DNA of 26,641 nt from Geosiphon pyriformis uo1 (Eukaryota; Fungi; Glomeromycota): assembly GCA_016748015.1 (NCBI GenBank), contig JAAOMT010000757.1, positions 1 to 26,641 of the forward strand, given 5' to 3'. The position numbers were made by a program, and so were the translations under genes. Below are positions 997-24,975 of this stretch, one piece after another. The notes below the pieces were generated by a model that saw only the letters and a list, made by a program, of their open reading frames with translations, was not told the origin of the DNA and did no database searches. Numbering within the stretch: position 1 is the first letter of the stretch; the number at the start of each line of letters is the position of its first letter.

Positions 997-1082
997 CAAA
1001 CCAAAACCGGTATTCGAGTACGATCTAGAGGGCCCTCATAGATAGCTCCAGGAAAAAAGGCATGGCAAAGAGGTAAGTAACT
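997..1082 (+). rRNA. rnl: LSU rRNA module L9 (about E. coli 1607-1692)
   Basis: CAAACCAAAACCGGT..TCGAGTA...GGCAAA...GTAAC is collinear with CAAACCGACACAGGTGGTCAGGTA...GGCAAAATGGTGCCGTAAC. Confidence 0.65.
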
Positions 1083-1126
1083 GCTACGGCTTGCAAGGAG
1101 AGGGGCTTTGCCACCTCTCCTATCGG

Positions 1127-1177
1127 AGATTGTAGGGAGCTTCGCTCCCTACTACACTCTCCCTACGGGAGAGTGAT
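1127..1177 (+). repeat. Double-hairpin element family E, variant 2
   Basis: AGATT-GTAGGGAGC-TTC-GCTCCCTAC-TA-CACTCTCCC-TAC-GGGAGAGTG-AT. Other copies lie near 8339, 10681, 16700 and 26530. Confidence 0.95.
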
Positions 1178-1349
1178 TGGTGGGGGGAGCTTCGCTCCCC
1201 CCCCCATACACACTCCCTACGGGAGTGTGATCCCCCCCCCCTCCTCCCCCCCCCACCCAGCACCTTTGGACTCTCCCCCCCCCTCCGGGGGGGGGATTGT
1301 CCCCCCCCCGTCGTAGACGGGGGGGGGGACTGGGGGGAGGGGCGGGGGG

Positions 1350-1410
1350 GGAGTAACGGGCGGTTGCTGTCTTGCGCGCAATGGGCGCCTACTCGGTCGC
1401 GAAAAGCCAG
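1350..1410 (+). rRNA. rnl: Possible LSU module L10 (about E. coli 1975-2020)
   Basis: GGAGTAACG-N7-GCTGTCT...ACTCGGT..GAAA resembles GGCGTAACG-N7/8-GCTGTCT...ACTCGGTGAAA. Confidence 0.4.
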
Positions 1411-2539
1411 CGCTCCCCACCCTAGTCCCCGACGGGGGGGGCGAACTCCCCCCGCGCCCCTTTCCCCCCCCGCACTGGGGGGGGAGGGCGGGGGGAGTAC
1501 TGGGGGGGGGGCTTCGCCCCCCCTCTCCTCGCCCCCCCCGCACTTCGTGCCCGCCTTCGTGCGGCACTTCGTGCGGCACTTCGTTCGCCCTTAATCCAGT
1601 CCCGGGCTCTCCCCCCCCCCCCGGGGGGGGGGATTGTCCCCCCCCCGTCGTAGCCGGGGGGGAGGACTGGAGGGGGGGGGGGGAGGGACTTCGCCCCCCC
1701 GCACGGAGTGCGGGGGGAGTGCTCGCCCTCCTGGAGGGACTTCGCCCCCCCCGCCTACGGTCCCTCCTCCCCCCAGCCCTGTGGACTGGGGGGGGAGCGG
1801 GGGGGAGTGCTCGATGGGGGGGGGCGAAGCCCCCCACCCATTCTTCGCCCCCCCGCACTCAGTGCGGGGGGAGTGCTCGCCCTCCTGGAGGGACTTCGCC
1901 CCCCCCGCCTACTCCTCCCCCCTACTGCGGGGGGCTATGGGGGGGCCCCGCCCCCCCTATGGGGGGGCTTCGCCCCCCTACTCCCGGTTTGGGAGAGAGT
2001 AAGAGGGGGGGCTTTGCCCCCCCTCTATCTCCCCCGCATAGCGGGGGAGTATCGCCCCCCCCGTCGTAGACGGGGGGGAGTGCTACTCTCTCCCCCCCCC
2101 TTTGGGGGGGCCAGTCCCGGGCTGNNNNNNNNNNNNNNNNNNNNGAGGGTATGGGACGGGGGGGGGGGTGTCGAGGGGGGGGGGTAGGCCTCCGGCCCCC
2201 CCACTCCCGGAGGAGATACCTCCGGCCGGTCCCTAAGCCCTCCCCCCCCCGCCTCTCCTCCCCAACCCTGCCCGGGGGGCGGCCTGCCACCCCCCTCCCC
2301 CCCCCTGCCCGCAGGGTGGTGGGGAGTTCGCCCCCCCGCAGGCGGGTGGGGAGTGCTCCGGGCAGGGGGGGAGTTCGCCCCCCCGTCGGGGACGGGTGCC
2401 CTCCGGGTGCCCTCCGGGCACGGAGTGCTGTGCTGGCGGGGGGGGCCCTGCTGGGGGGGAGCAGACGGGGGCGGAGCCAACCCGTCCGGGGGGGGGGGGG
2501 GGGGGGGGGGGGGGGGGGGNNNNNNNNNNNNNNNNNNNN

Positions 2540-2560
2540 TGCGTGCGTGCGTGCGTGCGT
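2540..2560. repeat. (TGCG)n microsatellite at a contig edge
   Basis: TGCG x5 directly after an N gap. Confidence 0.9.
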
Positions 2561-2601
2561 AGCGTGGCCCGGGGGGGGCATATTTGTGGCGAAGCCCCGG
2601 G

Positions 2602-22609: not shown

Positions 22610-22765
22610 CCATGAGACCCGAATCTAGGTGAGCTTACCATGGCCAAGCAATAGAGGCTGGACGGGTGTCCGTTACAGGGGGCTCCGATGAGCCGTGGTA
22701 AGGGGTGAAAGGCCAATCTAACCTGGATATAGCTGGTAATCTGCGAAAGCTATCTTAGTAGTACA
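22610..22765 (+). rRNA. rnl: LSU rRNA module L5 (domain II, about E. coli 665-830)
   Basis: AGACCCGAATCTAGGTGAGCTTACCATGG...GATGAG...GGGGTGAAAGGCCAATCTAACCTGGATATAGCTGGTAATCTGCGAAAGCTAT. Internal stems CTTACCATGG/CCGTGGTAAG and CTAGGT/ACCTGG are compensated. Confidence 0.93.
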
Positions 22766-23789
22766 CCTACAACGCCTCCTAGCCGGGGGGCCCTCGGCCT
22801 CCGGCCACCCCGCCATGCAGGCCGGGCACATCTGCCACTCCTCCCCCCGCTTCGCGGTGGTGGAGGAGCCCCCCCCGCCTGTCCCCCTTCCCCCCCCAGC
22901 ACGGCGTAGCCCTTTGCAAGGAGAGGGGCTTTGCCCCTCTCCTATCTGAGTAAGAAGAGAGGCTTTGCCCTCTTCTATCTCCCCCGCAAGGCGGGGGAGT
23001 ACTCTCCCCCCCCTCCCCCCCCGCCGGTGGTGGGGGGTGGGGGGGGAGAGATCTCTCTCCCGTCCCCCCCCCCTCCTACTCTCTAGCACTCCCCCCCGTC
23101 TACGACGGGGGGGGGGGCGATACTCCCCCGCTATGCGGGGGAGATAGAGGGGGGCAAAGCCCCTCTTACTCTCTCCCCCCGGAGGGGGGAGAGAGATCTC
23201 CCAAACCCCCCCCCCTTGCGGGGGGGGTGTGAGGGAGTAGGGGGGGGGGCGAAGCCCCCCATAGGGGGGGCGGGGCCCCCCCATAGCCCCCCGCAGGGCG
23301 GGGGGAGGAGTAGGGGGGGAGGGATTAAGGACTCCCCCAGCCTGCGGGGGAGTGGAGAGGGGCTTTGCCCCTCTCCTATCTGAGTAAGAAGAGAGGCTTT
23401 GCCCTCTTCTATCTCCCCCGCAAGGCGGGGGAGTACTCTCTCCCCCCCCCCTTTGGGGGGGGGGCAGGGGGGAGAGAGATCTCTCTCCCGTCCGAGTAGG
23501 GGGGGAGTGCTCTCGGGGTGGGGGCTTCGCCCCCCCCTTCTTCGCCCCCCCGCCTGAGTGCGGGGGGAGTGCTCTCCCCCCCCTCCCCCCCCGCCGGGGT
23601 TGGGGGGTGGGGGGGGAGAGATCTCTCCCCCTGCCCCAACCTTTGGGGGGCAAGTGGGGAGAGTACGGGGAGATTCGGGGAGTGGTGGCGAAGCCCCCTC
23701 CCCCCTCCTCCCCCCGCCTTCGTGCTTGGGGGGGGAGATCTTAGACCCGTCGACGGGTCTTAGCTCGGGGGGGAGAGGCAATAGAGACC

Positions 23790-23900
23790 ACTGCCCTGAC
23801 CAACTCCGTGCCAGCAGTCGCGGTAATACGGAGAGGGCTAGCGTTATCCAAACTGATTGGGCCTAAAGCGTATGTAGGCTGTCTGGTAAGCTTTGATATG
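23790..23900 (+). rRNA. rns: SSU rRNA module S4 (530 loop region, about E. coli 500-605)
   Basis: CAACTCCGTGCCAGCAGTCGCGGTAATACGGAG...AGCGTTATCC...TTGGGCCTAAAGCGTATGTAGGC. Confidence 0.96.
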
Positions 23901-24800
23901 GTAGCCCCTACTCCCTCCCCCCCCCCTGCCCGCAGGGTTGGGGAGTTCGCCCCCCCCCCCCCCGGNNNNNNNNNNNNNNNNNNNNCTCCTCGCCCCCCCC
24001 CGCACTTCGTGCCCGCCTTCGTGCGGCACTTCGTGCGGCACTTCGTTCGCCCTTAATCCAGTCCCGGGCTCTCCCCCCCCCTCCGGGGGGGGGATTGTCC
24101 CCCCCCCGTCGTAGACGGGGGGGAGGACTGGAGGCCCTTAATCCAGTCCCGGGCTGTAAGGGGGGGGTGGAGGGGGAAGGGGGAGTGCACTCCCCCGGCC
24201 TTGTGCCGCCCCCTGCCCTACGGGCAGGGGGACTCTCCCCCCTGCCCTCCTCCCCCCCCCTCCAGCCCTTGGACTCTCCCCCCCCCTCCGGGGGGGGGAT
24301 TGTCCCCCCCCCGTCGTAGACGGGGGGGAGGACTGGATTGACTCTCTCCCCCCCCCCCCGCCGGTGGTTGGGGGGTGGGGGGGGAGAGAGATCTCCCAGA
24401 AGGGCGGGCAGGGGGGCTCTCCACACGTCTGCACTCCCCCCCCACTACGGCGGGGGGGGGCCGTGACGGTGTGTGGNNNNNNNNNNNNNNNNNNNNGTGC
24501 CTACTCCCCCCCTCCGGGGGGGAGATCTCCCCGACCGGAGAGGGGGCTTCGCCCCCTCTCCTCACTCAGATTGGAGGGAGCTTCGCTCCCTCCATACACA
24601 CTCCCTACGGGAGTGTGATCCCCCCCCCCGCACTTCGTGCTACTCTCAGATTGGAGGGAGCTTCGCTCCCTCCATACTCTTCTAATATAATCCCTACGGG
24701 ATTATTATAGTAGTGATCCCCCCCCCTACTCTCCCAGTATGGGGGGGAGTAGCGGGGGGGAGTAGACGGGGAGTAGGGGGGGTGCGTGGGGAAAGGGGGT

Positions 24801-24836
24801 AGATGGTAGCCCTTTTGCACCTGCAACTATAGACCA
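24801..24836 (+). rRNA. rnl: Possible LSU module L4 (about E. coli 555-595)
   Basis: GATGGTAGCCCTTTTGCA resembles bacterial GATGGCGTGCCTTTTG(C/T)A. Short match only. Confidence 0.3.
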
Positions 24837-24904
24837 ACCCCACCAACCACACCCTGACGACACAACTGACATGACACAACCACCAACCACCCAAAATATC
24901 CATA

Positions 24905-24975
24905 CCCTAAGATGATCCTTAAAGATTTAAGAGGTTCTGAAGACCTGTTAATAGGACAGGAGGTCCTGAGGGCTG
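24905..24975 (+). rRNA. rnl: LSU rRNA module L12 (3' end region, about E. coli 2772-2845)
   Basis: CCTAAGATGA...TGAAGAC..GTTAATAGGACAGG resembles CCGAGATGA...TGAAGACGACGACGTTGATAGGCCGGG. Confidence 0.55.

Follow-up and report, generated by a model that had tools for sequence, protein, structure and literature searches.

Ribosomal RNA (rRNA) genes broken into separate pieces have been described in a few lineages of protists and algae, and bear on how much discontinuity a ribosome tolerates and on the remodelling of organelle genomes by selfish repeats. The mitochondrial rRNAs of Chlamydomonas reinhardtii are encoded in 12 modules and those of Polytomella magna in 13 fragments of 73–576 nucleotides (nt); in the mitoribosomes of Polytomella and Chlamydomonas, neighbouring fragments base-pair and dedicated proteins bind the fragment 3' ends, as was shown structurally (PMC9576764). 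Mitochondrial rRNA transcripts of Plasmodium falciparum measure 23–190 nt (PMC3382252; see also PMC2151934 for fragments in apicomplexans and dinoflagellates). The known mitochondrial DNAs (mtDNAs) of arbuscular mycorrhizal fungi are AT-rich and have two rRNA genes, and fragmentation of mtDNA genes in Gigaspora is cited in the same source from Nadimi et al. (2012) (PMC4316621). Here, a contig in which pieces of the small subunit (SSU) and large subunit (LSU) rRNA genes lie between hairpin repeats was analysed. The window is the whole of this contig, C703 (JAAOMT010000757.1, 26,641 bases), from the eukaryotic assembly of Geosiphon pyriformis (128.3 Mb, 792 contigs).

The original prediction, made by eye from the letters, was of about 20 scrambled mitochondrial rRNA modules. 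The split organellar-type rRNA genes on C703 were found to be real and unusual, and about half of the claimed modules were verified. Our preferred reading, given a probability of about 0.6, is that C703 is an incomplete and badly assembled stretch of an organellar (most likely mitochondrial) genome, very rich in G+C and saturated with repeats, whose rRNA genes lie in short blocks on one strand (at least six SSU and at least four LSU blocks recovered) split by hairpin arrays of 0.5–2.5 kb.

Ten rRNA blocks on one strand

Searched as a whole with Rfam, the window gave only two pieces, the 3' part of the LSU at 5921–6375 (189 bits) and the middle part of the SSU at 4762–5023 (86.6 bits). A permissive Rfam search (E ≤ 1) was swamped by false matches to hairpins resembling microRNA precursors, so that islands had to be cut out as loci. 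Twenty islands were excised and scored separately with Rfam covariance models. Six pieces (four SSU, two LSU) were confirmed in this way, four of them above the Rfam gathering score (50 bits) and two more SSU pieces at 24–29 bits (E ≤ 3.3e-4); the remaining islands gave no covariance-model match. A profile hidden Markov model seeded by E. coli rrnH was then iterated on 120 mitochondrion-like metagenome loci sharing the 530-loop variant of the window. Used with nhmmer, this profile contributed four further pieces (two SSU, two LSU; E. coli numbering), one of which is backed by helix complementarity. Single-sequence nhmmer with the E. coli query brought no gain over blastn, and pairwise blastn against the 120 metagenome loci recovered only the four strongest pieces.

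The total is ten rRNA pieces of bacterial (mitochondrion-like) type, about 55–460 nt long, which form ten separate blocks bounded by hairpin arrays. All are on the + strand, as are the coordinates given below unless stated otherwise. By arithmetic from the covariance and profile results, the six SSU pieces cover about 750–1050 of 1542 positions (about 50–68% of E. coli 16S) and the four LSU pieces about 750–875 of 2904 positions (at most 30% of 23S). For these ten pieces, the predicted location on the + strand and the correspondence to distinct, essentially non-overlapping parts of the rRNAs were borne out. Six SSU pieces were recovered against seven claimed, with the coverage just given for what had been described as most of the molecule. 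The figure of about 20 modules fell to ten, and that of 13 LSU pieces to four.

The 5' end of the SSU (E. coli positions about 11–144; model 1–196) lies at 21343..21540. It scored 29.1 bits with RF00177 (E 7.9e-6, at 21339–21550) and was found by nhmmer with E 1.7e-9; blastn aligned it to positions 13–71 of E. coli 16S. It pairs with three other pieces through helices H2, H3 and H4. The piece from about 376 to about 495 occupies 6870..6945, its 5' end cut by the gap at 6850–6869. Positions 376–405 were aligned by nhmmer at 6870–6898 with E 0.089 when the whole window was searched and 0.011 when only the islands were; this statistically weak piece was kept because H4, through which it pairs with the 5' piece, shows four compensatory double changes. 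The piece 499–614 (530 loop, helix 18; model 466–637) at 23785..23910 scored 59.3 bits with RF00177 (E 1.6e-15, at 23770–23930) and E 2.5e-29 with nhmmer, and is 75% identical to E. coli across 116 nt. The central domain and the start of the 3' major domain (about 639–1040; model 594–1066) are found at 4765..5195 (RF00177, 147.5 bits, at 4740–5220; nhmmer E 1.2e-61). The next piece, at 8436..8565, starts right after the gap at 8416–8435. Its positions 1056–1123 were aligned by nhmmer at 8436–8503 (E 4.1e-5), with no covariance-model match, and a motif, CAAGTCAT, suggests that it reaches about 1210. The SSU 3' end (1412/1475–1533, helices 44–45) lies at 10959..11072, right after the gap at 10939–10958; it scored 24.0 bits with RF00177 (E 3.3e-4, model 1412–1533 at 10959–11070) and E 6.4e-5 with nhmmer. 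The pieces at 6870, 8436 and 10959 all start on the first base past a gap, and so may reach further 5'.

The strongest LSU piece, at 5901..6365, runs from position 2379 to the 3' end of the molecule and carries the peptidyl-transferase ring, the A loop and the sarcin–ricin loop. It scored 280.1 bits with Rfam (E 2.2e-89, model 2388–2925, which is the last position of 2925, at 5890–6363) and E 5.1e-82 with nhmmer. Its peptidyl-transferase blocks are letter-for-letter identical to E. coli and to the profile consensus, and in its sarcin–ricin loop the usual GAGA is replaced by GCAA. The piece 651–855 (model 677–917) at 22592..22790 scored 89.6 bits with RF02541 (E 2.9e-26, at 22580–22800) and E 4.1e-32 with nhmmer. 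Two further pieces were found by nhmmer, neither with a covariance-model match. The first, about 2319–2374, lies at 2613..2703 and ends, in rRNA coordinates, where the next LSU piece begins; positions 2319–2374 were aligned at 2632–2686 (E 0.0024 in the window, 2.5e-4 on the islands). The second, at 18832..18936, is a probable LSU piece covering about 186–273. Positions 186–273 were aligned at 18836–18923 (E 0.54 in the window, 0.05 on the islands), and the alignment retains the AACTGAAA..TAA.TAC and AGTAG..CGAA blocks.

The coherence of the set was examined through piece boundaries and through the helices that would join separate pieces. Piece ends abut without overlap at about 495/499, 614/639 and 1040/1056 in the SSU and at 2374/2379 in the LSU. 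With E. coli 16S helix coordinates as we take them to be, the E. coli sequence itself was paired at 33 of 36 helix positions, the three unpaired ones all being in H20. Between the pieces of C703, 32 of the 36 positions were paired (H2, 3/3; H3, 10/10; H4, 8/9; H19, 3/4; H20, 8/10). Compared with E. coli, eight double changes in these helices are compensatory, four of them in H4. Conserved helices can thus be formed in trans between blocks. The clean abutting of ends and the maintained helices mean that the pieces are one selected rRNA set and not debris: the blocks are bona fide rRNA that partitions the molecule without overlap, with inter-block helices kept by compensatory changes.

Eight unique islands were not matched to rRNA: 1009–1163, 7924–8009, the duplicates 9214–9272/14574–14641, 10872–10938, 11434–11501, 14982–15119, 17680–17774 and 24801–24962. 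Neither the covariance models (E ≤ 1) nor the profile (E ≤ 100) matched them, and the clustering of their short words on rRNA coordinates was no better than in reversed-sequence controls. The LSU module at 14558 and the SSU module at 15014, which were said to share one gap-free segment, are two such islands, devoid of covariance, profile or word-test support; the supposed SSU module, at 14975..15125, resembles rRNA by eye only, at the level of motifs. RRNA-like words can be read by eye in 11434–11501 (TGAACCAG) and in 14982–15119 (AGGATGGCTAGCCA and GGCCAGACTC). They are leads at most, and are probably what had been noticed in the original prediction. From the spacing of its motifs, the island 10872–10938, which precedes the gap before the SSU 3' end, might possibly represent the SSU 1335–1400 region. 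The unmatched islands may be pieces of variable rRNA regions or something else.

Hairpin arrays and the support for the scaffold

The G+C content of C703 is about 70% overall and 64–74% when counted per kilobase. At a finer scale, composition and repeat analysis showed short islands of 45–55% G+C embedded in a hairpin-repeat matrix of 75–100% G+C, which bears out the predicted dispersal among hairpin repeats. Some low-GC 'islands' are themselves repeats of medium G+C content (5670–5735 = 8812–8875 = 25720–25784; family D8). The spacers between the pieces are 0.5–2.5 kb of repeat families (36, 29, 26, 24 copies, etc.) whose units are runs of G and of C with short closing loops. Almost all copies share the same orientation. 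A representative spacer, N-free and made of back-to-back G/C-run hairpins of families D3, D4, D7, D8 and D10, leads from an LSU piece to an SSU piece at 22791..23784; its first part (22790–23090, 301 nt) has a folding energy of −160.5 kcal/mol, far below that of shuffled sequences (z = −6.2). Repeat finding also revealed a tandem array of about eight copies of a 63-nt double-hairpin unit at 7078..7578, and further tandem arrays at 20452–20970 (39-nt unit) and 11094–11332 (8-nt unit); families D12, D6 and D1 cover the three arrays. A 19-nt exact motif forming a small hairpin (2700..2718) lies where one of the LSU pieces has its 3' edge. A pattern search found exactly two copies of it in the window, the other being at 22787–22805, on the 3' border of another LSU piece. 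From these two cases, the motif is a candidate 3' processing or stability signal.

No group I or group II intron, transfer RNA (tRNA) or 5S model reached the Rfam gathering score in the window or on the islands. ARAGORN called a tRNA-Arg(ccg) at 11993–12077 (85 nt) and a tRNA-Tyr(gta) at 13773–13866 (94 nt). Both lie inside hairpin repeats, have no Rfam tRNA support and were rejected; they are likely false positives due to GC hairpins.

The hairpin families were also found on nine tiny scaffolds of the assembly (C108, C395, C405, C180, C451, C204, C198, C178 and C106; L004–L013), which gave no rRNA signal. Each of these sister scaffolds consists of two or three pieces of 0.2–1.5 kb joined by about 3.5–4.5 kb of N. 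Several end in AT-richer (30–45% G+C) degenerate short repeats, which follow a semi-conserved element around CATCATGATTGCCC and for which BLAST found no other copy, so that the idea of telomere-like ends common to these scaffolds gained no backing. These ends could be the ends of linear molecules or the borders of repeat domains. Searches of bacterial and archaeal genomes and of viral contigs found neither the hairpin consensus nor an SSU-specific word.

Independent support was sought by comparing Logan unitigs and contigs of the runs holding the sequence (X1, X2 and X3, three runs of one sample) with 21288–26113. In X1, each unique island of this part is spanned by one unitig with an even k-mer depth of 42–61 (21288–21644, 22548–22876, 23601–23950 and 24753–25015), and the depth over C703 repeats ranges from hundreds up to about 19,000. 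The LSU piece 651–855 lies inside the unitig 22548–22876 and the SSU piece 499–614, with its flanks, inside the unitig 23601–23950; both unitigs pass from rRNA into hairpin DNA on both sides. This coverage means that each island and its immediate flanks are independently supported, and that the order of the islands is not. Near-identical duplications (95–99.6%) were found between 9214–9474 and 14583–14841, 1–278 and 4097–4373, 16363–16794 and 26205–26625, and 1689–2097 and 19335–19745. The first of these takes in a 'unique' island, and the scaffold may include redundant alternative paths of one locus.

The preferred reading and its alternatives

If C703 is part of an organellar genome with its rRNA genes in separate blocks, one strand would be transcribed as long precursors from which the hairpin arrays would be excised, the small hairpins at block edges being candidate processing or stability signals. 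The small rRNAs would stay unligated and would assemble in the ribosome through helices between separate molecules. For C703, this transcription and processing, the lack of ligation, the placement in mitochondria and the identity of the host are inferences; the mitochondrial location is suggested by the type and divergence of the rRNA.

Several results weigh against this reading. Part of the functional core of the ribosome was not found. In the window and its sister scaffolds, a fuzzy motif search for the decoding centre (SSU 1392–1407) returned spurious GC-rich near-matches only, and the SSU 340 region, the LSU GTPase centre, H69–71, the 2058 region and the P loop had no match at ≤25% mismatch. 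Assembly-wide pattern searches, which covered the decoding centre, H69–71 and the 2058 region (not the P loop or the GTPase centre), gave no organelle-type match for H69–71 and the 2058 region. For the decoding centre they gave matches to nuclear 18S and one match with a single mismatch on contig C51. The complete set of decoding centre, H69–71, 2058 region, P loop and GTPase centre was therefore not recovered. No Pfam COX1 or cytochrome b was found anywhere in the 128-Mb assembly, and no mitochondrial protein gene or supported tRNA gene was found beside the rRNA blocks. A search of sequencing runs found the sequence in the source sample only, with no RNA run, and X2 and X3, two further runs of this sample, lack the unique parts of C703. 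The scaffold has 23 runs of N (20 N long in 21 cases, 50 N in two), so continuity across gaps cannot be assumed. Self-comparison gave 41 repeat pairs of 150–434 nt at 95–100% identity, and no X1 unitig on 21288–26113 crosses a gap or joins two pieces. Because of the gaps, the dense long repeats and the lack of a linking unitig, adjacency and order rest on the original assembler.

The genome behind C703 is only partly assembled, so that the missing cores speak to the data and not necessarily to the organism. The decoding-centre match on C51 is probably due to chance and was rejected, the contig being unrelated, of 49% G+C and without other rRNA signal. C51 (L154–L155) has 12,511 gap-free bases and no long open reading frames, with G/T-rich degenerate repeats at 9100–9700 and GC-rich stretches at 1–700 and 8300–9100. 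The 16-mer with one mismatch is at 8907–8922 on the minus strand, and one short repeat is common to C51 and the window. The lack of COX1 and cytochrome b implies that conventional mtDNA was left out of the assembly, so that the absence of intact rns and rnl is uninformative. With metagenome mitochondrial LSU and SSU queries, organelle-type rRNA matches in the assembly were restricted to C703 (nuclear 28S aside), and the full-length SSU matches examined elsewhere (C658, C402) were nuclear 18S. Dispersed nuclear 18S copies (393–536 bits with the same model) lie at C658:1096410–1098236, in two places on C659, at C402:4389–6182 and on C227. They differ by single substitutions at the decoding-centre word, consistent with dispersed, non-identical ribosomal DNA (rDNA).

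The best-surviving alternative concerns the owner of the sequence. C703 may be high-copy mitochondrial or other organellar DNA of a minor contaminant, for instance an alga or protist from a lineage with fragmented rRNAs, which passed decontamination because nothing in it resembles a known gene; we give this a substantial chance, somewhat short of even. Its 70% G+C is far from the sampled rest of the assembly (nuclear rDNA regions, 34–52%), and the k-mer depth of 42–61 over its unique parts is low for the host's own mtDNA. The absence of these parts from X2 and X3 points the same way, as does the fact that the arbuscular mycorrhizal mtDNAs known so far have two ordinary rRNA genes (PMC4316621). 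Best identities to the 120 mitochondrion-like loci were about 67–85%, no better than to E. coli, so that no close relative was found among them. However, extreme GC would lower Illumina depth, and could account for both the low depth and the drop-out from X2 and X3. X1 unitigs total about 155 Mb against the 128-Mb assembly, hence X1 is not heavily contaminated. No protein genes of a contaminant, nuclear or organellar, turned up, COX1 and cytochrome b being absent throughout, which is a weak argument since mtDNA was filtered out. In the SSU tree, moreover, the window lies on a long branch as sister to the metagenome contig L087 (support 0.65), for whose nad5 the nearest Atlas cluster carries mostly Chytridiomycota labels. 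The neighbourhood of L087 may be a faint hint of fungal affinity, and nothing firmer was found for the fungal-type signatures of the original prediction. We put the odds that the fungus owns C703 at roughly even.

Two side observations concern these data. L087 (Ga0302176_10001068, 13.8 kb) is mitochondrial, with 34% G+C, the standard code, a contiguous rns and 16 tRNAs including Trp(cca). Run X2 contains 16S-like contigs with depths up to 16,000–25,000 that match the window at 23798–23849 (the universal 530 loop) only; their flanks are typical of Bacteroidota, Proteobacteria and one AT-rich sequence and are uninformative on the host rns. X2 looks like an rRNA-rich or bacteria-rich library.

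Were C703 fungal, fragmented rRNA genes would have arisen independently in Fungi, together with an extreme load of G+C and hairpins. That load would explain how such genomes escape assembly and annotation, C703 having survived mtDNA filtering and having 23 gaps. The complete form of this proposal, a Glomeromycota-type fungus with a hairpin-saturated mtDNA of about 70% G+C whose rns and rnl are divided into ten to twenty separately processed, interleaved modules on one strand, is rather doubtful as it stands; if true, Fungi would have their first case of rRNA genes in many pieces, and the mtDNA would, to our knowledge, be among the most GC-rich. Were C703 a contaminant, the organellar lineage behind it would still be undescribed, none of the 120 metagenome loci being closely related to it. 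In practice, scaffolds of fungal assemblies that are rich in G+C and give 'no hit' can turn out to be organellar.

A further alternative keeps the blocks and questions their order. Along the scaffold the pieces, named by rRNA and first position, follow each other as LSU2319, SSU639, LSU2379, SSU376, SSU1056, SSU1475, LSU186, SSU11, LSU651 and SSU499. One rotation brings nine of the ten into 5'→3' order within their own rRNA (LSU 4/4, SSU 5/6; P = 0.016 against random order). The arrangement is interleaved and near-collinear, not randomly scrambled. Such an order also weighs against the preferred reading, as it is equally compatible with collinear genes carrying huge insertions and with true dispersal. 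Two collinear rRNA loci could thus be interrupted in cis by long hairpin insertions, the shared repeats having made the assembler interleave them; fragmentation by spacers would then possibly still be real. We consider this unlikely. The near-collinear order speaks for it, as do the position of the one misplaced SSU piece (6870) on a 723-nt contig flanked by gaps, the repeats of 150–430 nt at 95–100% identity found throughout, and the partial redundancy of the scaffold (9214–9474 = 14583–14841). X1 unitigs are only 143–413 nt long, with dozens of alternative joints through repeats. On the other side, the N-free segment 22536–23965 has LSU 651–855 upstream of SSU 499–614, as had been predicted for this pair. 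Uniform + orientation suggests that the scaffolding holds real information, and interleaved pieces are known in chlamydomonadalean mtDNA (Boer and Gray, 1988, as cited in PMC9576764). The segment 22536–23965 is the sole verified N-free stretch with two different rRNAs, and only the original assembler resolved the high-copy repeats, about 580 bases, that separate the two. Given the long repeats and the lack of linking unitigs, the claim that scrambling is not only a scaffolding effect comes down to this one assembler-resolved contig. The 'scrambled' order may partly be a scaffolding effect.

That the blocks are dead fragments, from a nuclear insertion of mtDNA or from decaying mtDNA overrun by GC-rich mobile hairpins, with an intact functional rRNA elsewhere, is very improbable: the incomplete set, a depth over unique parts comparable to that of a possible nuclear locus and the GCAA sarcin–ricin loop would fit it, but the pieces abut and partition the molecules without overlap, eight compensatory double changes preserve pairing between them, the peptidyl-transferase core is near-perfect, the hairpin families are restricted to C703 and a few tiny scaffolds, with none on the large nuclear contigs returned, and no overlapping fragments, broken helices or nuclear-type flank were found on C703. 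Intron-interrupted rRNA genes were rejected, no intron family having reached the gathering score and the spacers being short-repeat arrays.

Comparison with known systems

A literature search found no description of a comparable fungal mtDNA. Within the Glomeromycota, Gigaspora provides a precedent for broken mitochondrial genes, reportedly in the form of a two-piece rns. We know of no arbuscular mycorrhizal mtDNA described with ten or more rRNA pieces or with 70% G+C.

GC-rich hairpin or palindromic elements occur in several mtDNAs, as the GC clusters of yeast, the double-hairpin elements of Allomyces and the palindromic repeats of Volvox, Haematococcus and Coccomyxa. As we understand them, these elements are, like the repeats of C703, short hairpin-forming families that spread through intergenic mtDNA and the variable regions of rRNA. 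On C703, in contrast, hairpins built from G and C homopolymers make up most of a sequence of about 70% G+C and separate the rRNA blocks by kilobases.

With the mitochondrial rRNAs of apicomplexans and dinoflagellates, C703 shares the division into many small modules that rebuild a conserved core, homology being seen in conserved parts only. The genomes of those organisms are tiny or AT-rich, and their modules are much shorter and lie on both strands, whereas the C703 pieces reach 460 nt, lie on one strand and hardly reduce rRNA length.

The chlamydomonadalean algae resemble C703 in that both rRNAs form separate blocks of tens to hundreds of nt, SSU and LSU blocks are interleaved (on C703, in the scaffold as assembled), and repeats or hairpins flank them. 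Neighbouring fragments are joined by pairing of conserved helices in the algae, and would be so on C703. The differences lie in the number of SSU pieces (at least six on C703, four in the algae), in the spacers, which on C703 are kilobase hairpin arrays of 75–90% G+C with no protein or tRNA genes between pieces, and in the near-collinear order within each rRNA. The assembly, finally, is that of a Glomeromycota-type fungus and not of an alga.

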